Shown piece after piece: positions 4,323-36,227 of a DNA stretch of 64,000 nucleotides. Positions within the stretch are counted from its first letter, which is position 1, and the number at the start of each line of letters is the position of its first letter. The stretch lies in sequence record OQ708376.1. One strand, written 5' to 3'. The position numbers were made by a program, and so were the translations under genes. A model generated the notes under the pieces. That model was not told where the DNA came from and made no database searches. It saw only the letters and a list, made by a program, of their open reading frames with translations.

Positions 4323-6986
4323 ATGGCAGGAGATCTACTCTCACCTGGCGTTTCCATTTCAGTAACTGATGAAAGTATGAGTACCGCTGCTGCTCCTGGC
4401 ACTGTACCACTATTTGTAATCGCTACTGCTGAAGACAAACTTGTCCCAGGAAGCAGTGCAATAGCTGCGGGAACTACTAAAGCAAACGCTGGAAAACTAC
4501 AGCTTCTAACATCACAAAAAAGCTCACTTGATACCTATGGTACACCAATTTTTCAAATGAATAACGGTTCTGTTGTTCAAGGTGATGAACTAAACGAATA
4601 TGGCCTACATGCAGTATATTCTTATCTAGGCATTACTAACCGTGCATATGTAATTCGTGCTGATATCGATCTAGCACAACTAGCACCAAGTGCTGAAGCA
4701 CCAACTGGCCCAGTATCCAATGGTACTTTGTGGTTTGATACCGCACAATCACAAGTAGAAGCGTATGTAGCGAAGAAAGATAGTCCAAGCAGTTTTTATG
4801 ATTGGCAACTTAAGCCAGTAACTATTGTAAGTGCTGAAGAAGTTGAAGATGTAAGTCTAGTAGGTTTAAATGTTGATGATTTAGTTCTACGTTACAAACC
4901 AAGCAATGGTCAGATGCTAATGTATAAACGTTCTGCTTCTGGGCTAGTGCAAATGGAAACTTATCTATCACCAATTAACAAAGTTCCAGTTGGCTCAACT
5001 GTAGAAAAAGGTAACATTTGGATTCGTGATGGTTACACCCAAAATGGTTCAAACTATTTTGGTACTCGTTTTGTTATTAAACGTTATGCATCCCTAACTC
5101 AAGTTTGGAATATTGTACCAGCATATACTGGTAATTCATTCCAAGAAATTGAAGCGAAAAGTGGTGTACTAAACAATAGTTATATCGCATCTCGTTTTGA
5201 TGAAGATAGTAAGAGTTTCTCTTTCTATATTCAAAGTGCAAAACTAACAACAATTAGTGCTCCTGCTTTGCCACTTGGTGAAACTATTATTGAACAAGCA
5301 GGTGCTGATAGTTATATGACTTTTGTTTATTTGAATAAATCAGTTAAAGTACTAGCAGTTCCACAAGGCGGTGTTATTAATACCCAAACTATCATCAATA
5401 ATCTAAATGCAAATGCTGAAATTATTAACGATGGTTTTAAATTTAAACGTGAAACTAATGGTGGTTTAGTTGTTTCCAATACAAAAGGTTACAGTTTCAA
5501 AATCACACAAAGTGGTGATGATATTTTTGCTGAACCTGAACTACAAAAACTAACTGTAGATAGTAACAACTACTCTCTAATTAACGTTAATAACTTCCGT
5601 GTTAGTTATTCAGTACCACGTAGTGTAGCAAAAGAAGGAACTCTCTGGTATGATTTCGGGAACTCCGATAATCTAACTGTAACTATGTATGTTGCTGATG
5701 TTGCTAATGATCAATGGGATCTAGTACAAGAAGAAAACAAATATGTACAAGTTGATGAACCAGCGGCTGACCGTTTAATTTGGGTTTGTCCTTTGTCTCA
5801 AGGCATTGATGGTTATGATTTCTATCGTAACGTTGATGGTGAATGGGTTAAACTTGACAGTACTGATCAAAGTACACTAAATGGTATGATTTTCCAAGAC
5901 TTTAATTTCCCAAGCCAAGTTCCTGCTGCGGCATTGTATCAAAATGGTATGCTTGCAGTTGACCTAGGTAACACTGAAGGTGTTGTTAAGAAAATGGTTA
6001 ATGGTCAATGGGAAGTTGTTAGTGGTGTAAGTCTTGATGGTGCTGGCCTATTTGGTCGTGCTGCACAACGTCAACTAGTAGTTGAAGCACTAGCTGCTGT
6101 TATTATTGGTAATGATGACATTCGTTCTGAATTTATTGATTTTAACCTAATTTGTGTACCTGGTTACGTTGAAACACTTGATGAATGTGTAACTTTAAAC
6201 ACTGATCGTAAAGAAACTGCATTTATTGTTACTGACGTTCCAGCACGTTTGAATCCAACCGGAAACGGTAGTGCTGTACAACAATGGGCTACTAATGCTA
6301 ACAATGCACCAAGCAACGGTTCAGTTGGTCGTACAACTGCTTATGATTATGCTGCTCAGTATATGGGTTGGTGTCTAAGTACTAACGTTGATGGTGAAGA
6401 AGTTGCAGTTCCTGGTAGTACTATTGCAATGCGTACATATGCATACAGTGATAGTGTTAGTTATGTATGGTATCCACCTGCTGGTACAACTCGTGGTGTT
6501 GTAACAAACGCTGCAAGTACTGGTTTTATCAACAGCGAAGGTGAATATCAACCAGTAGTATACAACCAAGGTCAACGTGACGTTATGTATACTAACAACA
6601 TTAACCCAATTGCAATGCGTCCTAACCGTGGTTTGCTTGTTTATGGAGATAAAACTCTATCTGCTAATCAAACTTCTGCACTAAGTCGTGTTAACGTTGC
6701 TCGTTTAGTTGTTTATATTCGTCGTCAACTAGAAATTATTTCCGAACCATTCCTATTCCGTTTGAATACTCCAAGTACTCGTCAGGAATTTAGTGGTGTA
6801 GTTAATAGCTTCTTGGCTGAAATTGTTCAACAACAGGGTCTTTATAACTTCGCAGTGGTTTGTGATGAAAGTAACAACACCGCAGAGCGTATTGACCGTA
6901 ATGAACTTTGGATGGATATTGCAATTCAACCAACTAAGAGTATTAACTTCATTTACGTACCAATCCGTATCGAGAAAACTCAATAA
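4323..6986 (+). CDS. tail sheath protein (T4 gp18-like)
   Basis: N-terminal LLSPGVSISVTDES; C-terminal WYPPAGTTRG, NINPI, GDKTL, RVNVARL, CDESNNTAERIDRNELWMDIAIQPTKSINFIYV. Confidence 0.95.
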   Translation: MAGDLLSPGVSISVTDESMSTAAAPGTVPLFVIATAEDKLVPGSSAIAAGTTKANAGKLQLLTSQKSSLDTYGTPIFQMNNGSVVQGDELNEYGLHAVYSYLGITNRAYVIRADIDLAQLAPSAEAPTGPVSNGTLWFDTAQSQVEAYVAKKDSPSSFYDWQLKPVTIVSAEEVEDVSLVGLNVDDLVLRYKPSNGQMLMYKRSASGLVQMETYLSPINKVPVGSTVEKGNIWIRDGYTQNGSNYFGTRFVIKRYASLTQVWNIVPAYTGNSFQEIEAKSGVLNNSYIASRFDEDSKSFSFYIQSAKLTTISAPALPLGETIIEQAGADSYMTFVYLNKSVKVLAVPQGGVINTQTIINNLNANAEIINDGFKFKRETNGGLVVSNTKGYSFKITQSGDDIFAEPELQKLTVDSNNYSLINVNNFRVSYSVPRSVAKEGTLWYDFGNSDNLTVTMYVADVANDQWDLVQEENKYVQVDEPAADRLIWVCPLSQGIDGYDFYRNVDGEWVKLDSTDQSTLNGMIFQDFNFPSQVPAAALYQNGMLAVDLGNTEGVVKKMVNGQWEVVSGVSLDGAGLFGRAAQRQLVVEALAAVIIGNDDIRSEFIDFNLICVPGYVETLDECVTLNTDRKETAFIVTDVPARLNPTGNGSAVQQWATNANNAPSNGSVGRTTAYDYAAQYMGWCLSTNVDGEEVAVPGSTIAMRTYAYSDSVSYVWYPPAGTTRGVVTNAASTGFINSEGEYQPVVYNQGQRDVMYTNNINPIAMRPNRGLLVYGDKTLSANQTSALSRVNVARLVVYIRRQLEIISEPFLFRLNTPSTRQEFSGVVNSFLAEIVQQQGLYNFAVVCDESNNTAERIDRNELWMDIAIQPTKSINFIYVPIRIEKTQ

Positions 6987-23247: not shown

Positions 23248-24615
23248 TTAAACTACAGAAACTCCACTCATTGAAGGTGGAACGATTTGTTCAGCAATTA
23301 ATAATAAATTAGTTACTGTAAACTTACCACCATGTGACATTAACGTAATAGGTGTTCCATTAGTTACTAGGTTACCATTTTCATCAACACTTAAAAATGT
23401 ATTAAATGAAATAGTATCAACCGTGATAGTTGGTGTTCTAACTTGATTAATATTATTAAATTGAGTATTTGTAAAATTAATAGCAAAACTCATATTAGAC
23501 GAACTAGTAGTCCATGTGCCGTATATATTTAATTTGAAATTTAGAGAGGAATTGAAATTATAAACATTTAACTTATTACTTGTTGTATTGAAGAAACTAT
23601 CTAGTGTTCCACTAGTGGGTGTGAATGATTTAAGTATTTGAATTAAATTTTGTTCAATTCCATCAGTGAATTGTATATTTAAGTTTGAATAATATAATTC
23701 TCTTTTTCTACGAATTAGGTTAGTAGTATTATTACCATTAACAAATAATCCAGTACTATCTGATGTTAATATATTACCAGAGGTATTACTGATTTTAGAT
23801 GAAATTACATTAGCGTCAATAGATATACCATTTCCCGCAGTATATGAGGATGGTCCAGTTGGAACATACAACCCATTTACGTCAGTTGTTAACGTATTTC
23901 CTGGAGTTGTGCTTATTTTAGTTGAAATTGTTTCTGAACTAATAGATATACCAGTACCACCAACGTAATTTATTCTTGTATTAGGTACAAATAATCCAGT
24001 ACTGTCAGTAGATAGTATATTACCAGAAGTAGAACTAATTTTAGTACTGATTACTTCACCACTGATAGAAACACCGGAACCAGCACTATAAGATACTGAA
24101 TTATCAGGCACAAATAAACCATTACTTGTAGAAGATAGTATGTTTTCTGATGTCGGGTCAACCTTCACACTTATTACATCATCACTAATAGTAATGCCAG
24201 TACCAGCATTGTAAGTTATCGAATTATCCGGTACGAATAGACCAGTACTATCAGTTGTAAGGATATTTCCTAAAGATGTGCTTATTTTTGATGATATAAT
24301 ATTATTATCTATTTTAATACTGTCACTACCTGTATATGTTACTGTATTATCAGGTACATATAAACCATTAGAATCATTACTAAGAATATTTCCTTGTGTT
24401 GAACTTATTTTTGTGGATATTAAATTAGAGGATATTGATATACCAGTTCCACCTTGATAGATAATAGTGTTATCTGGAACATATAAACCATCACTTTCAT
24501 GAATTAAAATATTTTTATTTTTAGTACTAATATCAGGCACTGGTATCTTGCCTATTAGTTCTCCGTCATAACTAATATCACCATTTACAATAATATCTGT
24601 TCTTATATTATACAT
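23248..24615 (-). CDS. repeat-shaft fibre with C-terminal Sf6-type tail needle knob domain
   Basis: Start at ATG 24615 (AAGGA RBS). Six 41-aa repeats. The C-terminus RRKRELYYS..LKSFTPTSGTLDSFFNTTSNKLNVYN..FKLNIYGTW..FLSVDENGNLVTNG..LLIAEQ parallels the recalled Sf6 gp9 knob sequence. Confidence 0.75.
   Translation of the reverse strand: MYNIRTDIIVNGDISYDGELIGKIPVPDISTKNKNILIHESDGLYVPDNTIIYQGGTGISISSNLISTKISSTQGNILSNDSNGLYVPDNTVTYTGSDSIKIDNNIISSKISTSLGNILTTDSTGLFVPDNSITYNAGTGITISDDVISVKVDPTSENILSSTSNGLFVPDNSVSYSAGSGVSISGEVISTKISSTSGNILSTDSTGLFVPNTRINYVGGTGISISSETISTKISTTPGNTLTTDVNGLYVPTGPSSYTAGNGISIDANVISSKISNTSGNILTSDSTGLFVNGNNTTNLIRRKRELYYSNLNIQFTDGIEQNLIQILKSFTPTSGTLDSFFNTTSNKLNVYNFNSSLNFKLNIYGTWTTSSSNMSFAINFTNTQFNNINQVRTPTITVDTISFNTFLSVDENGNLVTNGTPITLMSHGGKFTVTNLLLIAEQIVPPSMSGVSVV
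23735..24468 (-). repeat. six tandem ~123-bp (41-aa) coding repeats
   Basis: Unit Y.(G/A)G.GI.I....IS.KI....GNIL..DS.GL(F/Y)VP. Confidence 0.85.
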
Positions 24616-25513: not shown

Positions 25514-28500
25514 TTAAGCAGTACGTTGTGCAATAAACATATCTGTTACTGGACTCACCCCGTCATAAATGACTTGGTAGATAGTTACAGAGTTTGCAGT
25601 TTTGTTTAGAGTTCCATCAACAACCGCATAAGTACCATCAGTAGTAAAGTTTCTATTACCTGTTGCATCTTGTTTTACATAAATGTATACTGAAGATGCT
25701 TTACCACCACCGATTAGACCAGTGATTGGTGCTAGAGTTGTATCTTGATCTAGAGTGATAAAGTATACGTTGCTAGTACCGTCTGGGGTCCAAGTGCCAG
25801 TTGGTGCAATAACAGAAGAAGTTACTTGATTAGGAATAACATCATATTTTTTAGTAGTTACTGTTGTAGTAGTCAAGTCAGCATTAGTAGTTGTTAATTG
25901 ACCAGTTACAGTTACATCTTTATCAAATACTGCATTTTCTTTGAAAGAAGATGTTGCATTGACAGTTAATGTATCAGCAGCCGCGTCACCTAAAACAACA
26001 CTACCATTTGCAGTCATTAATCCAGTAACAGTTAAAGTACCACCGATTGTTGCTGCTCCAGTAACAGATGCACTAGCAAGTGTTGCTGCACCAGAAGTAG
26101 TAATAGTAGTTACTGAAGTTGCTGCTAGGGTTGCAGTACCTGTTGCAGAAATATCACCACCAACAGTTAGGTTACCAGAAGTAATCCCAACGGTTCCAGT
26201 AATGTTAGCACCACTTGACATTGTTACTGCACCACCAAATGAACCAGTAGTAGTTACTTCAAGGGTGTTCCCTTTTAGCAGACCAGTTGCAGTAATACTT
26301 GTACCTGCGGTAATGCTAGTACCAGCAGCAACACTGTTGGTTGCAGTTAATGATTTAACAGCTACATCAGAGTTTGCTTGGTTTAGTGTTGCGTTTAGAA
26401 CACCAGTTACTGTAAAGTTACCGTTGTTAACTACGTTACCATTGATTGTTAAGTTGTTGTTTTGTGAACCAACATCACCAATAGTTGCTGATTTAGAAAT
26501 CAACTCTGCACCAGAAGTAATATTACCCGCTGCACTAATAGTGTCAGCCGCAACAACTGCATAAGGTTCGATTGTTTGACCACTAACATCAATATCAGCG
26601 TTGATACCACCATCTACACGCAAGGAACCAGCAATGTAAGTGTTAGGGAAAATCTGAACTGTTTCTGGTTGTTCACCGATCTTAGTACCAATAATAACAT
26701 TAGAACCAGTTTTCACTGCACCAGAAGTTGTTAGTGAACCTAAAGTTGCTGCACCAGTTACACCTAGTGTACCACCAATTGTTGCATTGTTAGTAACTGC
26801 TAATGCAGTTCCTTCACCATTAAGAGTGATTGATGGAGCAGTTGCTGCACCAGTTACACCTAATGTACCACCAATTGTTGCATTACCATCTGAATGTAGT
26901 GTGGTTGCAACAGAAAGACTGTTTGCAACTACATCAGTACTAGCTAAATCCAATGCACCTGGCGTTAATGTACCAGTAATGTTAACATTATTACCAAAGG
27001 TTGCTGCACCAGTTACATCTATTGTAGTACTAAATGTACCAGAAGTTGCAGATACCGCACCTGAATCTAGTGAACCGACAGTTGCCTTTCCAGTTACACC
27101 TAGTGTACCACCAATTGTTGCATTGTTAGTAACTGCTAATGCAGTTCCTTCACCATTAAGAGCGATTGATGGAGCAGTTGCTGCACCAGTTACACCTAGT
27201 GTACCACCGATTGTTGCATTGCCGTTTGAATGTAGGGTTGTTGCAACAGAAAGACTGTTAGCATCTACATCAGTACTAGATAAATCCAATGCACCTGGGG
27301 TTAACGTGCCAGTAATATTAACATTGTTACCAAATGTTGCTGCACCTGTTACACCTAGTGTAGTACTAAATGTACCAGAAGTTGCAGATATTGCACCTGA
27401 ATCTAGTGAACCGACTGTTGCCTTTCCAGTTACATCTAAAGTACCACCAACTGTTCCATTTGTGGTTACTGCCAATGTACCAGTACTTAATTCTTGTGCA
27501 GTTACCTTACCGGATGCAGTAACAGTTGAAGTGGAAACACCACCAGTTAGAGTACTTGCACCAGTAACACTTAATGTGGTTGCAGCAGTTACGCTATTCA
27601 CGTTAAGATCAGCACCGGATAGGTCCAAACCACCTTCAGGAATAAATGCACCCTTAACAGTTAGTTTTTGTACAGTACTGTCACCAGTTACATCTAGAGT
27701 AGATGCTGTAAGGCCACCATTCATACTAGCTGCACCAGTAACACCAAGGGTAGTAGTTACAGTTGCACTATTAAGGGTAGAGTCACCAGAAATATTAGCA
27801 CTTGGTGCGGTAATAGTTCCTGCATCAACTTGAATACCACCATCAACTACTTGAATACCACCAGTATTAACTGTTAGTTTACCACCAGTTGACAATGTGT
27901 TTGAAACTGTAGTTGCACCAGTTAACGTTGTGGTTCCAGTAACACCCAAGTTACCAGAAATAGATGGACTACCTGTAATGTTACCTGTAGTTAGAATCAA
28001 ATCAGTACCTACAGTGGTAGAGCCAGTACTTTCTAGTGTTACACCGACGATGTTTGCAGAACTTAGGTCAATAGAACCATCAACAGTTAAGTTACCTTGA
28101 ACGGTTGCATCACCTAGAGAAGTTAATGTCTTCACAGACACATCAGTTGTGCTAAGATCAATAACACCCGCAGTTAGTGTTCCAGATACTGCTAAATTAC
28201 CAGTAATCGCGGTATTTTTAGTAATGGATACATTTTCTGCCGCTGAAGTAATAGAACCAACAGTAAGTACACCACCAACAGTTGCGTTATTAGTTACATT
28301 TAGAGCAGTTCCAACACCAGATAGTGTTGCTGACCCACCAGTAATTGCACCTGAGATTGAAGCTGTTGCTGCTGAAACATCACCAGAAACTACTGCATTT
28401 GTTGCATTTAGAGCAGACACTGTAACTTCAGTACTTTGAACTTTAGGTAGAACGTTGATACCTTCTGCACTACTAACTGTAATAATACCAGTACTTGTTA

Positions 28501-31500
28501 GAGATTTAACAGATACATCAGAACCACTTAAATCAACTGTACCAGAAACAACAAGATCTCCACCAATATTTGCTCCAGCGGTAGTAGTAATGGATTTTGC
28601 ACTTACATCAGTTGTGCTCAAATCAATTGCACCTGGTGTTACTGTACCAGAAACTGTTAGGTCACCAGTAATAGATGTATTATTGGAAATAGATACACCA
28701 TCAACGTTACTAATTGTTGGGGTTTCTACAGAAACTGCTTTAACTTTACCTGAAGAAGTTACGTCAGCTACGGTAGATGCACCAGTAACATTCAAATTAG
28801 TAATATTTGCAGTTGTTGAACCAAGGGTTGCAATAGTTGCATCAGTACTTTGAAGTTTAGGTAGAACACTACTAATTGTAGATTCATTACTAACAATTGC
28901 ACCAGTACTAGTTAAAGATTTGACAGTAACATCAGCAGTAGTAAGATCTACTGTACCATTAACAGTTAGGTTACCACCAATAGTTGCACCAGCAGTAGTA
29001 GTAATGGATTTAGCATTAACATCAGTTGTTGCTAGATCGATAGAGCCTGGAATAACTGCACCAGTAACGGTTAGGTCACCAGTTACATTTGTATTATTGG
29101 AAATAGTGACACCACTTGCATTTGAAATGGTTGGGGTAACCAACGATGCAGTTGTAGTTTCACCAGTTACAGTTAAAGTTGACCCAACTAGAACAGATGA
29201 GCTTGAGTAAATTGTACCCAAATTAGCAGATCCGGTAACAGTTATATCATCAGCATTAACAGTAGTTGCCGTTATGGTAGTACTATTAAGTACAGGAAGT
29301 ACGTTAGCATTAACAAGGTCATTACTTTTAACAATACCAGAAGAAGTTAGTGATTTAACGTTAATGTCTGCTGCTGATAAATCAAAAGAACCTTGAACCA
29401 CAAGATCTCCACCAATATTTGCACCAGCGGTAGTAGTGATTGATTTCGCACTAACATCAGTAGTACTCAAATCAATTGTACCTGGGGTTACTGTACCAGT
29501 AACTGTTAGATTTCCAGTAATATCAACATTTTCTGTGAAGTTAGTATTACCACTAATAGTTGGTGCAGTCAGAGTTGTTGCACTAATATTAGTACCGTTA
29601 ATTGTTTGTCCACTTACAGTTCCACTCGCAGTGATAGTAGGAGCCGTTACTTCAGTAGATGCACTAATTGTTGGTGCAGATACAGAAGTTGTACCAGTAA
29701 TAGAACCAGAACTTACTGAACCAGCGGATAATGCACCAGAAAGAGTTGCAGTTGTACCAGCAATATCACCAGTAACAGTTAGTTTAGCACCCACGGTAGT
29801 GTTACCAGTACTTTCAAGGGTTGCACCTTTAATATTTGTCGCAGCAACAACTGAGTTTGGTGTTAGATCCTGACCACTTACATCAACAGTTAACCCAGTT
29901 ACGGTGCCAGTAAAATCGACATCATTAAGAATTGCTTTACCACCAACTTGTAGGAATGGTGTACTAGGGTCTTGTGTTGCGTTACCTGTAATGGTTAGGT
30001 AATCTAATTTGTTTAGGCCATTACCAGTAATACCATACGTAGAAAGTGCAGCATTACCAAAAGTTGCCGTTTTTAGAACGTTCAGTGTTGAAGGAGAAAC
30101 TAATTCTGATTGAACTTCGTTAGGTAAAATCACGGTTGGACGTTGACTTGGTGCAGTATATCCAAATCCAAGTTTTACAGCAGAATCTTGACTACTTTGG
30201 CCTAAGCTGATAGCTTTAAATGATGCAGTACTATTATACCCAGTAATATTAGAACCAAGAGTAACACCACCAACTAATGAAGTTGCACCAGTAACGTTCA
30301 AAGATGCTGCATTAATATCGTCTAATTGGAATGTTCCACCAAGAACACCAGAAATATTAATATTATTAAAATTAGCAGTTCCAGTACTTTCAATATTTGG
30401 TATAGTTGCAGTTCCGGTGACTTCAAAGTCAGCAACTTTGGTTTTTCCTTTTTGAACTTCTAATAGTGGTGTATCTGGAGCTTGTGTTTCGTTACCAGAA
30501 ACTGTTAGATAATCTAATTTGTTTAGGCCATTACCAGTAATGCCATAAGACGATAATGACGCATTACCAAAAGTTGCAGTTTTAAGAACGTTCAATGTAG
30601 AAGGAGAAACTACTTCTGATTGAACTTCATTAGGTAGAATAACTGTTGGGCGTTGACCGGGTGCAGTATATCCAAAACCTAGTTTCACTGCTGCATCTTG
30701 ACTATTTTGACCTAAGCTAATAGCTTTAAAGGTAGCAGTACTATTATACCCAGTAATATTAGAACCAAGAGTAACACCACCAACTAACGAAGTGGCCCCA
30801 GTAACGTTCAATGTTACTGCATTAATATCATCTAGTTGGAATGTTCCACCAAGAACACCAGAAATATTAATATTATTAAAATTAGCAGTTCCAGTACTTT
30901 CAATATTTGGTATAGTTGCGGTTCCTGTAACTTCAAAATCGGCAACTTTGGTTTTTCCTTTTTGAACTTCTAATAGTGGGGTGTCTGGTGATTGTGTATT
31001 GTTACCAGAAACTGTTAGATAATCTAATTTGTTTAGACCATTACCAGTAATACCATAAGAAGATAATGACGCATTACCAAAAGAAGCAGATGTCAAAACT
31101 GTTAAGTTTGCAGGTGACATTAACTCGGACTGAATTTCGTTTTGTAGAATAACAGTTGGGCGTTTACCAGGAGCAGTGTAAGGGAAGCTTAATCTGAAGG
31201 TTTGTGATTCAGAGTTAGAACCAATACGAATGTCTTTAAAAGTAGCAGTACTGTTAATACCAGTTACGTTAGCACCGAAAGTTACTGCACCTTGTTGGTT
31301 AGATGCACCAGTAACGTTCAATGTTACTGCATTTAAGTCAGATAGATTAAACTCACCACCAAGTGTACCACTAATTGTCACATCTTTAAATGTAGCAGTA
31401 CCAGTACTACTAATATCTGTTGTACTTACATTAGTAATTTCTGCGGTATTAGCAGTAATTTTATCAAATGCAGCAGTAGTCCCAACATCAGCAGTAATAT

Positions 31501-31903
31501 TACCTTTAAATGCTGTTGTTTCAGCAACTTCTAAGTTTTTAACTTTAGTTGCTTGTAGAGTGGTTGTACCAGCAGTTTGTGTAAAATCAGAACCAACTGA
31601 TACAGTACCGTTAAAGGTAGCGTTTGAATTAATTGTTGCTGTATCAGACCCGACCACTGCACTACCGATTGTAGTATTACCCTCAACACCAAGACCACCA
31701 GAAAGTGTTGCTTTGCCACCTACATCTAAAGTAGATGTAATATTGGCAGTTGATGATTCAATGGCAGTAAAAGTTGCATTTGCAAAAGTTACAGTACCAT
31801 TTACAGTTAGGTTATTGTTGAAAACAGCATTTCCTTTGACTAAAAGATCCTTACCAACCGTACCAGCACCAGTAATATCTAAGTCAGTTTTTATTGAGTA
31901 CAT
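25514..31903 (-). CDS. long tail fibre (2129 aa, T/G/S/V/A/N-rich repeats)
   Basis: Uninterrupted ORF; GGAGGG RBS; TAAATA at 31939-31944; beta-repeat shaft; C-terminal tip domain with YVKQDATGNR..LNKTANSVTIY. Confidence 0.85.
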   Translation of the reverse strand: MYSIKTDLDITGAGTVGKDLLVKGNAVFNNNLTVNGTVTFANATFTAIESSTANITSTLDVGGKATLSGGLGVEGNTTIGSAVVGSDTATINSNATFNGTVSVGSDFTQTAGTTTLQATKVKNLEVAETTAFKGNITADVGTTAAFDKITANTAEITNVSTTDISSTGTATFKDVTISGTLGGEFNLSDLNAVTLNVTGASNQQGAVTFGANVTGINSTATFKDIRIGSNSESQTFRLSFPYTAPGKRPTVILQNEIQSELMSPANLTVLTSASFGNASLSSYGITGNGLNKLDYLTVSGNNTQSPDTPLLEVQKGKTKVADFEVTGTATIPNIESTGTANFNNINISGVLGGTFQLDDINAVTLNVTGATSLVGGVTLGSNITGYNSTATFKAISLGQNSQDAAVKLGFGYTAPGQRPTVILPNEVQSEVVSPSTLNVLKTATFGNASLSSYGITGNGLNKLDYLTVSGNETQAPDTPLLEVQKGKTKVADFEVTGTATIPNIESTGTANFNNINISGVLGGTFQLDDINAASLNVTGATSLVGGVTLGSNITGYNSTASFKAISLGQSSQDSAVKLGFGYTAPSQRPTVILPNEVQSELVSPSTLNVLKTATFGNAALSTYGITGNGLNKLDYLTITGNATQDPSTPFLQVGGKAILNDVDFTGTVTGLTVDVSGQDLTPNSVVAATNIKGATLESTGNTTVGAKLTVTGDIAGTTATLSGALSAGSVSSGSITGTTSVSAPTISASTEVTAPTITASGTVSGQTINGTNISATTLTAPTISGNTNFTENVDITGNLTVTGTVTPGTIDLSTTDVSAKSITTTAGANIGGDLVVQGSFDLSAADINVKSLTSSGIVKSNDLVNANVLPVLNSTTITATTVNADDITVTGSANLGTIYSSSSVLVGSTLTVTGETTTASLVTPTISNASGVTISNNTNVTGDLTVTGAVIPGSIDLATTDVNAKSITTTAGATIGGNLTVNGTVDLTTADVTVKSLTSTGAIVSNESTISSVLPKLQSTDATIATLGSTTANITNLNVTGASTVADVTSSGKVKAVSVETPTISNVDGVSISNNTSITGDLTVSGTVTPGAIDLSTTDVSAKSITTTAGANIGGDLVVSGTVDLSGSDVSVKSLTSTGIITVSSAEGINVLPKVQSTEVTVSALNATNAVVSGDVSAATASISGAITGGSATLSGVGTALNVTNNATVGGVLTVGSITSAAENVSITKNTAITGNLAVSGTLTAGVIDLSTTDVSVKTLTSLGDATVQGNLTVDGSIDLSSANIVGVTLESTGSTTVGTDLILTTGNITGSPSISGNLGVTGTTTLTGATTVSNTLSTGGKLTVNTGGIQVVDGGIQVDAGTITAPSANISGDSTLNSATVTTTLGVTGAASMNGGLTASTLDVTGDSTVQKLTVKGAFIPEGGLDLSGADLNVNSVTAATTLSVTGASTLTGGVSTSTVTASGKVTAQELSTGTLAVTTNGTVGGTLDVTGKATVGSLDSGAISATSGTFSTTLGVTGAATFGNNVNITGTLTPGALDLSSTDVDANSLSVATTLHSNGNATIGGTLGVTGAATAPSIALNGEGTALAVTNNATIGGTLGVTGKATVGSLDSGAVSATSGTFSTTIDVTGAATFGNNVNITGTLTPGALDLASTDVVANSLSVATTLHSDGNATIGGTLGVTGAATAPSITLNGEGTALAVTNNATIGGTLGVTGAATLGSLTTSGAVKTGSNVIIGTKIGEQPETVQIFPNTYIAGSLRVDGGINADIDVSGQTIEPYAVVAADTISAAGNITSGAELISKSATIGDVGSQNNNLTINGNVVNNGNFTVTGVLNATLNQANSDVAVKSLTATNSVAAGTSITAGTSITATGLLKGNTLEVTTTGSFGGAVTMSSGANITGTVGITSGNLTVGGDISATGTATLAATSVTTITTSGAATLASASVTGAATIGGTLTVTGLMTANGSVVLGDAAADTLTVNATSSFKENAVFDKDVTVTGQLTTTNADLTTTTVTTKKYDVIPNQVTSSVIAPTGTWTPDGTSNVYFITLDQDTTLAPITGLIGGGKASSVYIYVKQDATGNRNFTTDGTYAVVDGTLNKTANSVTIYQVIYDGVSPVTDMFIAQRTA
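26750..27430 (-). repeat. two tandem 336-bp (112-aa) near-identical repeats in the long fibre
   Basis: CCTTCACCATTAAGAG occurs at 26811 and 27147; duplicated VGSLDSGA...TGKAT unit. Confidence 0.9.
29995..31395 (-). repeat. three tandem 510-bp (170-aa) repeats in the long fibre
   Basis: AATCTAATTTGTTTAG occurs at 30001, 30511 and 31021; ATGTTCCACCAAGAACACC at 30331 and 30841. Confidence 0.9.
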
Positions 31904-32005: not shown

Positions 32006-32034
32006 AACCAGACTTATTTAGGACAAGTCTGGTT
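32006..32034 (-). terminator. intrinsic terminator with TAAATA spanning the loop
   Basis: Minus strand AACCAGACTT-GTCCTAAAT-AAGTCTGGTT followed by TTTT. Confidence 0.7.
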
Positions 32035-32042
32035 AATTTTTT

Positions 32043-32939
32043 TTACTTACCAGAGATGACAATCTTACCACTGAAAGAAATATCAGAAGTGAAGATTACA
32101 TCACCAGTACTACTAATTTGTGTATCAGTCACTACCAATTCAAATGGAGATGACGCAACACTCCCAGGTGTTTTATTTGCATAAATTGAAATATACAAAT
32201 TATCTGGTGTTTGATTGTGTTCAGATGCAGGAATAGTGATTGTAAAATCACCAGCACTAGAAACCCAATCTGCTTGGTTTACCAATTTACTATAAGGTAC
32301 TGTCATTGTTGTTGCTCCTATAATGTTTACTTTAACACTTGCATAATCTGTGATTTGACCAATCACATCAATTGTTATATCCCCAATACCACTAACTGTT
32401 ACTGTGGTTTGGAATACTGATTCCAATGCAACATTACCTGGGTCACCTTGTAGTTGGATCATAATATCAGAACCTCTACCATGAACTGATTCTGGTAGTG
32501 TGTAAGTATAATGATCAGTAGTATCTGGTACTAATGTAAATGCAGAAACAGGAACTATTTCAGTAGTTACATATGAACTATCAGTCCCAGGTGAGCTACC
32601 TTTAAATGGTTTCCAAATACCAAGATCTTTAATATAAATTTGAAGAACATTAGTACTATCAACCAAAAAGTAAACGTCACCATCTAGACCGATTGAATCG
32701 GATGGTGCTGTTGTTCCACGTAAGATACCAGAACTACCACCACCACTGTGTGCGTTTAAATATCCCAATGTAACCAAGTGTGTGTTTGCAGTTGGTTCAC
32801 CTGCTGAAATTGGAAGAAGTTGTGTTCCTGAGTAGTTTTGAATTTGCACAACACTACCATTTGTGGTAATCTGTGCACCATTCTTCCCAAGAATGAAGGA
32901 CTTCTTCATGGTTCCTTCTAAATTAGAAAAAACTGCCAT
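32043..32939 (-). CDS. fibre/tailspike adaptor-like structural protein
   Basis: N-terminal ~110 aa is paralogous to the adjacent tailspike (MAVFSN.EGTM...FILGK.GA). Two C-terminal modules resemble the C-terminus of the 21196 protein. Confidence 0.65.
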   Translation of the reverse strand: MAVFSNLEGTMKKSFILGKNGAQITTNGSVVQIQNYSGTQLLPISAGEPTANTHLVTLGYLNAHSGGGSSGILRGTTAPSDSIGLDGDVYFLVDSTNVLQIYIKDLGIWKPFKGSSPGTDSSYVTTEIVPVSAFTLVPDTTDHYTYTLPESVHGRGSDIMIQLQGDPGNVALESVFQTTVTVSGIGDITIDVIGQITDYASVKVNIIGATTMTVPYSKLVNQADWVSSAGDFTITIPASEHNQTPDNLYISIYANKTPGSVASSPFELVVTDTQISSTGDVIFTSDISFSGKIVISGK

Positions 32940-32955
32940 TTTAATATAATCTCCT

Positions 32956-35097
32956 TTATGGTAGGGTTATGTAAGTTACGGGTTGGGCAGCTTTTAATGC
33001 TGCACCAGCGGCAGTTGCTGTTATGATAGGATCTGCAATATCAATTCTATATACGTTGTTTACAACATACACTGCACGAGTTATATACGTTCTCAAATCA
33101 CCACCATTTTCACCAGCACCGGATATAATGATCTCAGTACCAGCAGCTTTTGCATATTGGTTTTCACCCCATGACACACCCAATGCTTCTATGTATGTTT
33201 GTCCTGCTACCGTTTGTCTAATTGTGTCATATTTTCCGAAAAAAGAACCACCAACAGTTACAATATATTTTCCACCCGATTGTTTATGAATAATCGTGCC
33301 TTCAGAGAAATAGCGTCCCCCAGGAAAAGTATCGTATGGAATATAATATTGCTCAACTACAGGTATCAGTACTGGGCCACGGTGACCTGTACCATCGATT
33401 GCAGTTGTAACTTTAAAGTTATTAGATGATTGGTCTATTCTGTCTACATACATTTTAGAAAAACTATATTTTGAAACATTACAATCATCTTGAACAACAC
33501 AGTTAGTCCAATTAGTATAAGTATATTTAGAGCGAGTATAGATACCACCACCTTCGCCTTCGGTAGAGAGGTGTTGACCAATTACATCTAATTCTTTAGT
33601 TCTAATATCACTAAATTTAGATGATGATGGCAAACCACGCCAAAGGATTTTAGAACAAGTGATATTGCTCAATTCTGTATTATTTAACCAATTATCAGAA
33701 CCGGAAGTATAAACAAGTATAGAAGACTCTGGAATATAGAGATTAGAAATTTTAAAGTTTCTAGGTGGTCCAGCAAAACGACCAGAAGTTACACCCCAGT
33801 TTATTGAAACCATTCTATTTGTGATAGAAGGATCATTAAGCAAATGACCAGTCAACCCATCAATAATGAATTCTTTCGAACCATAAGTTATAACACCAGC
33901 AGTGGTTAATCCAGTACCAACAGAAACTAAAGATGATGGATAAACTTCATTATTAAGTATTTTAAAGTCCATTCCTAATTCAACGTGTATACATTGTCTA
34001 ACATTATATAGTCTGTTATTTTTAATAACAAAGTTTCTGACATATTGTGTATCTGGTGCATCTAAACCATAAGGACCAGAACCAGCAACGCCAATACCAA
34101 TGCCCCAGTTTGAAAGTGGGATTGGAGCGTTAGAACCATCAACGTTTTCAATTACGTTTCCTTCAATCACAAAACCATCAGGATAATGTGAGTTAATTAC
34201 GTTTAGTTCAATTGCATCACCATAGATATCATGAATATGGTTATATGAATATCTACCAACCTTCATTTTCTCACCAGTACCTTGTTGAAGAACACCATAC
34301 TTACATTGGGTCATTTCATTAAAGCAAAAATCTATTGTTCCTGGTTGTGTCATACCTTGCATTAAAAATGCAGCAGTACTTGTGATGTTTATAAATTTAT
34401 TAAAATAAAACTTACCATCGCCACCGAAGAATTTTAAATAACATCCAGTAAGTGTTGCAAATTGTATTTGGGAATTAATAACAGATACCATAGTACCACC
34501 GTTACCAGTAATAGTTCCCCCAAACCAAGTTACATCTTCTAGGTATATTGCAGTTTTGATACGGTAATTACCACCAGCCTGAATTTGGATTTTATTTTCT
34601 TTAGCATAAGCAGCACATAAATTTACAGCAGCAGTGTCATCAGTTTCGCCATCACCTTTAGCACCAAATTCTTCTGGTGTTATATAAAACTGGGCCTGTT
34701 GAACTGTACCTCCAGTAATAAGTCCGATGAAATCGCCACCATTTTTACTGGATAGAACTTTTTTATTAATGTATAATGATTTTACCCATGTACCATTACT
34801 TTTTGCAAAAATATCAACAATACCATCTTCATCAATTTGAAAATACGTATTATTGTTCTTTCCTACATCATCGGTAGGGGGTACAACACCAAATAATGCA
34901 TTAGGGTTATCTTCAAGATATTTTACGTTAACTGCTGAATTAGGGTCAGATGAAGTTCCTACCTTCAGTGGTAGGAACTGTTCTCCTAGATAATCTTTTA
35001 TAGAAACTGAATCATTGATAAAATTTATTGAAGCACCTTTTTTCCCCAATATGAATTTGGGCTGCATAGTTCCTTCAAAATTAGAAAATACTGCCAT
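32956..35097 (-). CDS. tailspike with WcaM-like beta-helix, putative colanic acid depolymerase
   Basis: PEEFGAKGDGETDDTAA pectate-lyase-like start. The segment DIYGDAIELNV...NWGIGIGVAGS..Y......VRNFVI.N......RQCIHVE.G parallels E. coli WcaM as recalled (DLQGDAIEWNV..NWGIGIGLAGS..VKNFVVAN..RQLVHVENG). Confidence 0.8.
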   Translation of the reverse strand: MAVFSNFEGTMQPKFILGKKGASINFINDSVSIKDYLGEQFLPLKVGTSSDPNSAVNVKYLEDNPNALFGVVPPTDDVGKNNNTYFQIDEDGIVDIFAKSNGTWVKSLYINKKVLSSKNGGDFIGLITGGTVQQAQFYITPEEFGAKGDGETDDTAAVNLCAAYAKENKIQIQAGGNYRIKTAIYLEDVTWFGGTITGNGGTMVSVINSQIQFATLTGCYLKFFGGDGKFYFNKFINITSTAAFLMQGMTQPGTIDFCFNEMTQCKYGVLQQGTGEKMKVGRYSYNHIHDIYGDAIELNVINSHYPDGFVIEGNVIENVDGSNAPIPLSNWGIGIGVAGSGPYGLDAPDTQYVRNFVIKNNRLYNVRQCIHVELGMDFKILNNEVYPSSLVSVGTGLTTAGVITYGSKEFIIDGLTGHLLNDPSITNRMVSINWGVTSGRFAGPPRNFKISNLYIPESSILVYTSGSDNWLNNTELSNITCSKILWRGLPSSSKFSDIRTKELDVIGQHLSTEGEGGGIYTRSKYTYTNWTNCVVQDDCNVSKYSFSKMYVDRIDQSSNNFKVTTAIDGTGHRGPVLIPVVEQYYIPYDTFPGGRYFSEGTIIHKQSGGKYIVTVGGSFFGKYDTIRQTVAGQTYIEALGVSWGENQYAKAAGTEIIISGAGENGGDLRTYITRAVYVVNNVYRIDIADPIITATAAGAALKAAQPVTYITLP

Positions 35098-35111
35098 TAT
35101 GACATCCTCCC

Positions 35112-36227
35112 TTAAATATTATCTTGAATCGGTTGGATAGGAGCTTGCCATGAAAGAGTACAAATAATTTCCATTTTTCCATAAGGACTGTTGTTAACAG
35201 AATCGTTGAATACACATGAAATAATTTCATCAACATCGGATGCTGCATGATTAGTTTCATTAACAATAAAACGCATCTGACGATTGATATCAAAGTAGGA
35301 AGTTGGTGCAATTACCGTCCCGCCAATATCTTCTTGTGCTTCACCACCAAAACGTACAAACATATCAGTTACTGGAAGAGAATAAGGTTGTATAACGTTT
35401 ACATCAATATTAGAAACTACATATCCAGCAGGACATGTACCAATAACTAATAGTGCGTTAGTCCATGAGCTATCTATGGTATTTCTAATAGAAATTGTAT
35501 CTTTACCTGGTGCACCTGGTTCGCCTTGTATACCTTGAATACCTTGCTGGCCTTCTTTACCACGGAATAGAATACCCTCACTCCACTCTTTTGAAGGAGG
35601 GGTAGTTGTAGTTACTTCATCAACATAATATAGTTTTCCATCAGTGTTGTTATAAAAACAATAATCAACTGGAAGATTTTCAATACTTGGAAATTGATCA
35701 CCACTGCTATCAATATGGAAACGACCACGCGGACCTTGTTCACCACGGAAAGGTATACCATCACTCCAAGTAGCAGTTACACTTTGATAGAAATAAAGTT
35801 TACCATCTTGAGTATTATAAAATGTATAGTTATTAAAAAGACCAGTTGTTGGGAAAGTAGTTCCAGCACTATCAATGTGGAACGGCTTACCCGCTTCACC
35901 CGTATCACCTTTACCAAACTCAACACTAATCCATGTACTTGTCGGATCTTGTGCATCATTTGATTTAAAGTATAGAGTACTGGTATTGTTAGCCAAGCTT
36001 AAGTAGCACCACCCAAGTGGTTCACCAACTTTAAATTGTTCGGAAGGAATTTCAAAACCAATCTCATTAGGATAAAAGTTTTTACCATTCTCGCCATTCT
36101 GTCCTACAACAAGACCTAAATCTTGAATTGTGTTATCTGCATAGGTTACAATTAAATGCCCAGCACCATTAATAACTAGACTTTTGATGCCGGAGTTATT
36201 ACATGAACCATTAAATGAAATTGTCAT
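35112..36227 (-). CDS. collagen-like structural protein
   Basis: ATG 36227 with AAGGGA RBS and TAAATA at 36264-36269; short G-X-Y runs (GKEGQQGIQGIQGEPGAPGKD); duplicated FHIDS.G..FP...FYN..DGKLY...W module. Confidence 0.7.
   Translation of the reverse strand: MTISFNGSCNNSGIKSLVINGAGHLIVTYADNTIQDLGLVVGQNGENGKNFYPNEIGFEIPSEQFKVGEPLGWCYLSLANNTSTLYFKSNDAQDPTSTWISVEFGKGDTGEAGKPFHIDSAGTTFPTTGLFNNYTFYNTQDGKLYFYQSVTATWSDGIPFRGEQGPRGRFHIDSSGDQFPSIENLPVDYCFYNNTDGKLYYVDEVTTTTPPSKEWSEGILFRGKEGQQGIQGIQGEPGAPGKDTISIRNTIDSSWTNALLVIGTCPAGYVVSNIDVNVIQPYSLPVTDMFVRFGGEAQEDIGGTVIAPTSYFDINRQMRFIVNETNHAASDVDEIISCVFNDSVNNSPYGKMEIICTLSWQAPIQPIQDNI

Follow-up and report, generated by a model that had tools for sequence, protein, structure and literature searches.

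Colanic acid forms the slime coat of enterobacteria, and its overproduction (mucoidy) gives E. coli a common and broad means of escaping phages. A long gene in the tail region of an Escherichia phage, given in a preliminary description as a predicted colanic acid depolymerase tailspike, raised the question of which glycan its product acts on, whether the product travels with the particle and how its parts came together. The window, i.e. the whole stretch of 64,000 nucleotides that was analysed, was 100% identical at the nucleotide level to OQ708376.1, Escherichia phage vB_EcoM_CRJP21 (Asteriusvirus, a RaK2-like jumbo phage). We consider the product to be, quite probably, a virion-borne tailspike of two modules, a RaK2-type anchor and a phi92-gp150-type colanidase, which would cut colanic acid for host access. 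The depolymerase prediction stood up as one made from relatives, through close gp150 homology and a shared fold.

The gene and its tail operon

The open reading frame was intact, began with ATG and encoded 713 aa (Table 1). By our own arithmetic, DNA of about 35% GC would stay open over such a length by chance with a probability of approximately 1e-23. This is a real, well-supported gene with a strong ribosome-binding site. Antisense open reading frames of up to 88 aa were seen on the plus strand inside it. They were treated as chance occurrences and are unannotated in both records examined (121Q and CRJP21).

Table 1. Features of the tailspike gene, its product and its neighbours in the window (nucleotide positions unless residues are given).
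Feature	Position	Strand	Remarks
Upstream conserved tail protein gene (121Q gp574 / RaK2 ORF062w / CBB_228 type)	35112..36227	-	PHROG 13565 'tail protein', E 2e-220
Shine-Dalgarno GGGAGGA	35105..35111	-	7 nt before ATG, directly after the upstream gene's stop codon; read from sequence
Colanidase-type tailspike gene	32956..35097	-	gp_306 of vB_EcoM_CRJP21; orthologue of 121Q gp573
N-terminal anchor, residues 1 to ~105	34783..35097	-	Putative virion-attachment module of the RaK2 clade, not phi92-like
Neck/linker, residues ~106-140	34678..34782	-	phi92 gp150 homology begins around here; pLDDT 44-62
Right-handed parallel beta-helix, residues 141 to ~560	33418..34677	-	Predicted enzymatic body; pLDDT mostly >90, stacked short strands
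WcaM-like core, residues 262-459	33721..34314	-	TIGR04004 match; most conserved stretch, probable active-site region
Motif GDAIELNV	residues 293-300		
Motif NWGIGIGVAGS	residues 330-340		
Motif VRNFV	residues 353-357		
Motif RQCIHVELG	residues 367-375		
C-terminal domain, residues 561-713	32959..33417	-	Homologous to phi92 gp150 C-terminal part
Downstream 298-aa virion protein gene (121Q gp572 / CBB_227 type)	32043..32939	-	PHROG 10468 'virion structural protein'
Intrinsic-terminator-like hairpin	32006..32034	-	12-bp stem then T run; closes three-gene unit; consensus scan only
Long tail fibre gene, 2129 aa	25514..31903	-	Separate unit after terminator; PHROG 4549 'tail fiber protein'

The 574-type gene immediately preceded the anchor-bearing gene in Asteriusviruses, RaK2, GAP32 and CBB, and was separated from it by one short gene in XaC1. 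The small virion proteins of the RaK2 clade thereby follow the conserved tail protein as the tailspike does. Both CBB_228 and CBB_227 have been found in virions by mass spectrometry (PMC5259590). The 574-like tail protein had no match among PDB sequences. The 298-aa protein was modelled with a pLDDT of 78 as beta-sandwich domains; no PDB fold matched it below E 0.03, and its matches in BFVD were limited to uncharacterised relatives and collagen-like fibre proteins. Beyond the terminator, the 2129-aa fibre gene has a 121Q homologue annotated 'long tail fiber proximal subunit'. A promoter scan was uninformative (51 sites against 55.7 expected).

Relation to the phi92 colanidase and to WcaM

The closest relative of known structure was the colanidase tailspike gp150 of phage phi92 (PDB 6E0V/6E0W), matched with an E value of 1.8e-235 between residues 96-712 of the query and 11-623 of the chain. 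These were also the only convincing matches when a profile of 46 homologues was compared with solved structures. A phi92-type protein (P0005) shared 57% identity over about 619 residues, the BLASTP alignment starting at query residue 96 and P0005 residue 189, and identity to phi92-type proteins within the beta-helix was 51-66%. In a Foldseek search with the AlphaFold (AF2) monomer model (pLDDT 81), 6E0V_A was the top match (TM 0.95, rmsd 2.5 A, 605 columns), all others being generic beta-helices with E >1e-6. Sequence comparison supports a close relationship between the tailspike and the gp150 colanidase of phi92, in line with the main reading of the preliminary description. PHROG 6117, 'colanic acid degradation', matched at E 3e-264; its category is 'moron, auxiliary metabolic gene and host takeover', not 'tail'.

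This protein shares with phi92 gp150 (Justusliebigvirus) the beta-helix body, the C-terminal domain and the conserved motifs of the core. The C-terminal alignment reached the last residues of both 6E0V and P0005, and the matching part of P0005 carries the Pfam domain TSP_Ig-like. The two differ at the N-terminus, where the approximately 188 residues of the phi92 type (precomputed Pfam PF26208) are replaced by an unrelated anchor of about 105 residues. Residues 1-95 were only about 18% identical to phi92-type N-termini, and the PF26208-type attachment domain was absent. The carriers differ as well, being a 366-kb jumbo phage here and a 148-kb phage in the phi92 type. The beta-helix start that had been noticed earlier (PEEFGAKGDG..DDT) was located at residues 141-155 (nt ~34633-34677), and a weak match to Pfam Pect-lyase_RHGA_epim (PF12708) reached 24.3 bits, short of the cut-off of 27, over residues 143-250.

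The NCBIfam WcaM profile TIGR04004 matched the core with an E value of 2.1e-26, so that both of the expected similarities, to gp150 and to WcaM, were recovered. The WcaM match was partial, however, scoring 92.6 bits against an equivalog cut-off of 794.6 and spanning 198 residues at profile positions 162-347 of 464. All four WcaM-like motifs that had been placed around 33970-34260 were present (nt 33973-34221) and lie on invariant columns. The earlier label 'WcaM-like' holds for the homology of the core; the protein itself is not a WcaM. Both contain a beta-helix core roughly 200 residues long in which D, E, W, R, H and E columns are invariant. WcaM has some 464 aa and is encoded in the wca cluster; the tailspike has 713 aa, with an anchor of phage type and the C-terminal domain of a tailspike, and is encoded in a phage tail operon. 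A WcaM-like protein (P0045) was 31% identical to the tailspike core, and the alignments support a more distant relationship to WcaM than to gp150. A precomputed PF27800 'WcaM' assignment was present on 45 of 45 homologues, including P0001 (94% identity); the local copy of Pfam returned no PF27800 model.

Residues 251-460 formed the region of highest identity to every homologue and diverged more slowly than the remainder of the protein. Columns invariant over the 46 homologues, one of them a WcaM-like protein, included D294, E297, N299, W331, R367, Q368, H371 and E373. From this conservation we propose D294, E297, W331, R367, H371 and E373 as candidate catalytic residues. As the shortlist is shared with the host protein, it makes the role of WcaM approachable by structure comparison.

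Anchor module and age of the exchange

The N-terminal anchor shared 38% identity (E 4e-20) with the start of the downstream gene product, whose paralogous copy occupies residues 1 to ~110. In tblastn searches it matched RaK2, K64-1, GAP32, CBB, XaC1 and others with E values of 1e-13 to 3e-17, and RaK2, GAP32, CBB and XaC1 carried the domain at the corresponding syntenic position. RaK2 ORF061w, GAP32 gp221, CBB_227 and 121Q gp572 all begin with this domain of about 105 residues (34-39% identity). Across the RaK2-like clade, only Asteriusvirus possessed two copies. On these comparisons the anchor is a RaK2-clade module duplicated from the neighbouring 298-aa virion protein gene, and the colanidase is an insertion specific to Asteriusvirus within a tail operon that is conserved. 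What is added here is a precise domain map, in which an enzyme has been joined to an anchor specific to the clade at a tail locus that is itself conserved; the map may aid the reading of receptor-binding gene clusters in jumbo phages.

An anchor profile detected 99 representative proteins. In the search for a fold of the anchor and of the 572-like protein, a profile compared with PDB sequences gave nothing significant, and the anchor region was modelled with low confidence. Its first ~68 residues head varied cargos: none in RaK2 (ORF061w, 115 aa), a beta-sandwich in the 572 type and a colanidase in Asteriusvirus. Other RaK2-clade small proteins carry about 190 residues of beta-sandwich, and none carries a beta-helix enzyme. 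Further cargos were another beta-helix, a fibre with an S74 chaperone domain, and BNR-propeller proteins of 1200-1370 aa. We tentatively suggest that the anchor could serve RaK2-like jumbo phages and related phages as a general adaptor of the plug-in kind, with the colanidase and its neighbour docking at equivalent sites on one tail component of a branched receptor-binding apparatus. The 574-type protein was not found in three metagenomic anchor-bearing loci and is therefore not proposed as the docking partner. In one metagenomic relative (P0006) the colanidase core was flanked by the anchor on one side and a C-terminal domain of the 572 type on the other, a layout that looks as if the cassette had been inserted into a 572-type gene.

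The preliminary description had also drawn module exchange from a use of AGA and ATA codons above that of core genes. The enrichment itself was real: AGA made up 11 of the 18 Arg codons, compared to 22% elsewhere in the window (p 6e-4), and ATA 20 of the 64 Ile codons, compared to 16% (p 0.0035). It was not diagnostic, however, as two of 36 genes exceeded the tailspike in AGA and eight of 36 in ATA, some core tail genes among the eight. GC content (0.351) and GC3 (0.199) equalled the window means, divergence of the tailspike between Asteriusviruses tracked that of the flanking tail genes, and no tRNA genes that could account for the rare codons were found in the window. As an argument for recent transfer, codon usage was discarded. 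The exchange is real by domain mosaic and synteny, and it is old, since GC content and divergence track the flanking genes.

Proposed function, rival explanations and distribution

The anchor, copied from the small virion neighbour, would most likely attach the spike to the fibre network of the tail or baseplate. Residues ~96-713 would then form a right-handed beta-helix with a C-terminal domain, presumably trimeric as in other tailspikes. The six candidate catalytic residues fall on three successive coils, and the groove that they form most likely binds colanic acid. The backbone would be hydrolysed into repeat-unit oligosaccharides, and the particle could cross the slime layer that E. coli or Salmonella forms on Rcs induction and so reach its membrane receptors. 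Trimer formation, virion incorporation, colanic acid as the substrate and the role in infection are all inferred, the last two by analogy: hydrolysis of colanic acid and passage through mucoid coats are projected from phi92 gp150 and the enzyme of phage NST1. According to PMC13450770, which cites Xu et al. 2025, the bond of colanic acid that gp150 reportedly hydrolyses is beta-1,4 Glc-Fuc. The NST1 colanic acid hydrolase (CAE, GenBank HM214492) has been shown experimentally to release repeat-unit products (PMC9143390). The sole lead to the NST1 enzyme here was a weak match (E 2.9e-4) to PHROG 8280, 'tail spike protein with colonic acid degradation activity'.

The same fold and attachment could serve another substrate, with an O-antigen, a group 1/4 capsule or another exopolysaccharide being cut or bound. 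The specificity of tailspikes can shift with few changes. The only characterised close relative, gp150, is 57-65% identical rather than nearly identical, which may leave room for an altered glycan specificity, and relatives of the cassette (27-38% identity) are found in phages that infect genera with differing glycans (Klebsiella, Cronobacter, Enterobacter, Pseudomonas and Stutzerimonas). Against this, the core at residues 251-460 is the best conserved part, and its columns are invariant even with WcaM-type proteins of the colanic acid cluster. The gene was also kept in all Asteriusvirus records found, across the hosts O157, O103, K-12 and Salmonella; retention whatever the O-type of the host agrees with a glycan that all these hosts share, such as colanic acid. 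We therefore regard another substrate as unlikely. Somewhat less likely again is a soluble enzyme, made late and freed at lysis, that thins nearby slime (giving plaque halos and faster diffusion) outside the particle. The auxiliary category of PHROG 6117 would suit such an enzyme, and PMC13532299 speculates that the enzyme aids diffusion in lawns. The protein is also missing from the published virion proteome of phAPEC6, but this absence says nothing, because the phAPEC6 record lacks this CDS. The N-terminal anchor, moreover, is the same as in a protein shown in the virions of a relative (CBB_227), the gene lies inside a tail-gene unit, and its closest relative is a tailspike.

A catalytically inactive spike, binding its glycan and leaving it uncut, appears very improbable. 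The catalytic residues were assigned by conservation, which gives this reading its footing, but every invariant acidic, His and Arg column of the family is retained and the slow divergence of the core likewise argues against it. A biosynthetic role like that of WcaM could be read from the partial profile match and from the label 'colanic acid biosynthesis protein' in the GenBank records of Sharanji, slurp01, BF17, fEgEco12 and UE-S1. It was effectively refuted by the test of WcaM membership, with a score far under the equivalog cut-off over a short match, and we give it next to no weight. No other wca gene is nearby, the gene belongs to a tail operon, the protein has a tailspike C-terminal domain, and its N-terminus showed no export signal by inspection. 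A virion-borne colanidase tailspike remains the preferred reading. Phage colanidases of this kind are of practical interest for host access and biofilm penetration, given mucoidy as a means of phage escape. Colanidase is also used as a tool for making colanic-acid oligosaccharides.

The same cassette was present in 255 phage records. The host had been predicted to be an enterobacterium; it is E. coli, and near-identical phages have been isolated on Salmonella. A receptor-screen preprint that includes phage G17 does not name the G17 receptor in its main text, and the literature searched yielded no paper on the activity or virion location of an Asteriusvirus colanidase, nor any structural or proteomic record of the protein. 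The kind of gene is already known, and its function has been assigned by annotation in sister genomes. The tailspike gene was 99.9% identical in nucleotides to 121Q gp573, annotated 'colanic acid-degrading protein'; together with the 'colanic acid degrading protein' of PBECO4, this is the same gene at the same locus (99.9-100% nucleotide identity), with no substantive difference. In OQ708376.1 itself, product names are five genes out of register, and users of this record should be aware that the deposited annotation is displaced. Because of this shift, the tailspike gene is labelled 'MutT/NUDIX' there.

The colanidase gene and its relation to gp150

The colanidase gene of vB_EcoM_CRJP21 (gp_306) is intact, has a strong ribosome-binding site and lies within a tail-gene unit. 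Its position and those of the surrounding features are listed in the table, where window base 1 corresponds to base 124001 of OQ708376.1. Over 24 kb surrounding the gene, the window matched this record of Escherichia phage vB_EcoM_CRJP21 at 100% identity. By our arithmetic, DNA of ~35% GC would contain so long an open frame by chance with a probability of ~1e-23. The gaps in the three-gene unit measure 14 and 16 nt, and the long tail fibre gene starts ~100 nt beyond the hairpin. A promoter scan was uninformative (51 sites against 55.7 expected).

Features in and around the colanidase gene (window coordinates)
Feature	Position	Strand	Remarks
574-type tail protein	36227-35112	-	first of three consecutive genes
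GGGAGGA (Shine-Dalgarno)	7 nt before colanidase ATG	-	directly after stop codon of upstream gene
Colanidase ORF	35097-32956	-	second of three consecutive genes; 713 codons, uninterrupted, ATG start
Anchor copy, colanidase	34768-35097	-	
572-type protein	32939-32043	-	third of three consecutive genes; 298-aa virion protein
Anchor copy, 572-type protein	32610-32939	-	
Hairpin	32034-32006	-	12-bp stem and T run; closes three-gene unit
Long tail fibre gene	25514-31903	-	2129 aa
455-aa gene	23248-24615	-	GC 0.294
gp_301	21196-23160		

Residues 96-712 of the colanidase aligned with the crystallised phi92 tailspike gp150 (PDB 6E0V/6E0W; E 1.8e-235), bearing out the kinship proposed in the preliminary description. 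An AlphaFold model based on a 46-sequence alignment had a mean pLDDT of 81, exceeding 90 through most of residues 141-560, and superposed on 6E0V_A with a TM of 0.95 and an rmsd of 2.5 A. The structure matches after 6E0V were generic beta-helix enzymes and tailspikes (E above 1e-6), and the family profile found no convincing relative among solved structures besides gp150. PHROG 6117, 'colanic acid degradation', matched the colanidase with E 3e-264.

The beta-helix start quoted from the sequence was present at residues 141-155, and a Pfam pectate-lyase-like match, below threshold, covered residues 143-250. All four WcaM-like motifs named in the preliminary description were likewise found (residues 293-300, 330-340, 353-357 and 367-375; nt 33973-34221). 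The resemblance to WcaM extends to a match of the NCBIfam WcaM profile to residues 262-459 (E 2.1e-26), and a WcaM-like protein, P0045, was 31% identical to the colanidase over this stretch. Aligning the colanidase with 45 database homologues showed D294, E297, N299, W331, R367, Q368, H371 and E373 to be among the invariant columns; they map to beta-strands 296-299, 333-338 and 368-373 of the AlphaFold model. Since these strands lie on three successive helix coils, coil periodicity suggests that the invariant residues should form one surface patch. The PF27800, PF26208 and PF27114 assignments are precomputed matches on homologues.

The cassette was found in 255 phage records from many genera, behind at least six types of N-terminal attachment domain (P22 head-binding, T7 fibre, TSP1/Gp66, tail-collar fibre, phi92 type and the type described here). 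Published work ranks it as one of the best-conserved receptor-binding proteins in phi92-like and related phages.

The duplicated anchor and the age of the graft

Residues 1 to ~105 of the colanidase, the anchor, had no similarity to phi92-type proteins (~18% identity). Homology to these begins at query residue 96, aligned with residue 189 of P0005, a protein of the phi92 type. The counterpart of residues 1-104 is instead the N-terminus of the adjoining 572-type protein (38% identity, E 4e-20). Of the first 33 coding bases, 30 are shared by the two anchor copies; past this point, only about half of the positions agree. Other RaK2-like phages carry the anchor once, at the corresponding locus. 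In RaK2 itself, ORF061w (115 aa) consists of the anchor and nothing else, and in GAP32, CBB and XaC1 the anchor heads a 572-type protein of ~287 aa that is followed by the long tail fibre. The anchor-bearing gene directly follows the 574-type tail protein, a conserved protein typified by 121Q gp574, in Asteriusviruses, RaK2, GAP32 and CBB; in XaC1 one short gene stands between them. As two anchor copies occur in Asteriusvirus records only, the colanidase gene was added specifically in Asteriusvirus, between two conserved tail genes, by the joining of a local anchor copy to a gp150-type cassette.

The extreme N-terminus of the anchor, its first 11 residues, is nearly invariant across the RaK2-like clade and may be the actual docking peptide. 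A profile built from both window anchors retrieved 99 representative proteins. Profile positions 1-68 head other cargos, namely another beta-helix, a fibre bearing an S74 chaperone domain and BNR-propeller proteins. Positions ~65-110 correspond to a short motif of which many long fibre-like proteins of unrelated phages contain up to 11 copies. Against the PDB, anchor residues ~65-105 (34783-34900) matched designed beta-propeller blades, but weakly and below significance. Anchor pLDDT was 26-55 in the colanidase and mostly better, ~50-83, in the 572-like paralogue, for which structure and profile searches found no solved or annotated structural relative, nor for the anchor.

In a metagenomic RaK2-like phage, the 792-aa protein P0006 (L013 6320-8698), whose gene adjoins thymidylate synthase, combines an anchor (36-41% identity), a WcaM-type core and ~93 C-terminal residues like the 572-type C-terminus. 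It is a different arrangement of parts found in the window genes.

The AGA and ATA codons had been taken as a hint of module exchange. Both are indeed enriched in the colanidase (AGA 11/18 of Arg against 22% in the rest of the window, p 6e-4; ATA 20/64 of Ile against 16%, p 0.0035), but the bias is not distinctive: 2 of 36 genes had higher AGA and 8 of 36 higher ATA, the latter including a core tail gene. The anchor is also ATA-biased, and the GC (0.351) and GC3 (0.199) of the colanidase equal the window means. The graft is real but old. Between Asteriusviruses the colanidase diverges in step with its surroundings: nucleotide identity to UE-S1 was 87.8% for the gene and 86.2% for the 24-kb region, and protein identity to A4 was 63%, with 54-72% for the flanking tail genes. 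The graft predates the Asteriusvirus radiation and has been inherited vertically since.

Proposed working and alternatives

We consider it probable that the colanidase is an anchored trimeric tailspike hydrolysing colanic acid for passage through slime. It would trimerise like other tailspikes, its anchor fastening it to the fibre network of the tail or baseplate at the same kind of attachment site as that of the 572-type protein. The beta-helix groove would bind colanic acid and hydrolyse its backbone, and the particle would work through the slime layer to membrane receptors.

According to PMC13450770, which cites Xu et al. 2025, gp150 hydrolyses colanic acid at the beta-1,4 linkage between glucose and fucose. 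Another phage enzyme, the colanic acid hydrolase of NST1, releases repeat-unit products (PMC9143390). The colanidase body belongs to the gp150 family and is predicted to work alike; the attachment domain of gp150 is absent from it. A changed glycan specificity of the spike seems unlikely. A spike that only binds its glycan is a very improbable reading. Rather improbable, too, is a soluble, non-virion enzyme. The view of the anchor as a virion-attachment module is best supported at present by mass spectrometry of CBB virions, which detected the anchor-bearing CBB_227 as well as CBB_228, the tail protein encoded upstream (PMC5259590). A WcaM-like biosynthetic role is scarcely credible. Identity with WcaM was rejected, the profile match being partial and scoring 92.6 bits against a cut-off of 794.6, and the gene lying in a phage tail operon. 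Several records label the gene 'colanic acid biosynthesis protein', which is misleading, as the colanidase is not a WcaM.

Related records and neighbouring fibre genes

The phage vB_EcoM_CRJP21 is an Asteriusvirus, among the RaK2-like jumbo phages. The colanidase gene was 100% identical in phages UB, G17 and Sharanji, 99.9% in 121Q and 99.0-99.8% in four phages isolated on Salmonella Typhimurium. Orthologues in the GenBank records of 121Q and PBECO4 were already annotated as colanic acid-degrading proteins, an annotation that Asteriusvirus papers repeat without experiments, so that the function had been assigned before. The literature searched contained no activity, virion-proteome or structural data on an Asteriusvirus colanidase and did not mention the anchor duplication or the graft, which are a small new detail. 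The phAPEC6 record (L012, MK817115.1 182380-191521) is 99.6% identical over the colanidase gene. Neither the colanidase nor the 572-type gene has a CDS there, the numbering jumping from gp253 to gp256, and so neither protein could appear in the published virion proteome.

The record of vB_Ec-M-J (OQ718158.1) splits the colanidase into two CDS in different frames, equivalent to one frameshift-type break, and two CDS also underlie the match in the Salmonella-phage records OR699182.1 and OR699183.1 (SD-6_S16 and SD-1_S14). Compared with 121Q, product names in the vB_EcoM_CRJP21 record are shifted by five CDS over window 20000-44000 (OQ708376.1 144001-168000). The colanidase is thus labelled 'MutT/NUDIX hydrolase', gp_299 'long tail fiber proximal subunit', gp_309 'Clp protease' and gp_301 'colanic acid biosynthesis protein'; gp_301 had no WcaM similarity.

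The long tail fibre has 1841 aa in 121Q, and in several phages the match to the 24-kb region starts only at query base ~4490-5090, inside the long tail fibre gene. Its length and these boundaries indicate that the fibre varies within the genus, while the colanidase is nearly identical. The low-GC 455-aa gene, with the strongest AGA/ATA bias in the neighbourhood, matched PHROG 1030, 'tail needle knob' (E 4e-70). The corresponding position in 121Q lacks it, which suggests a variable cassette for receptor binding within this fibre cluster.
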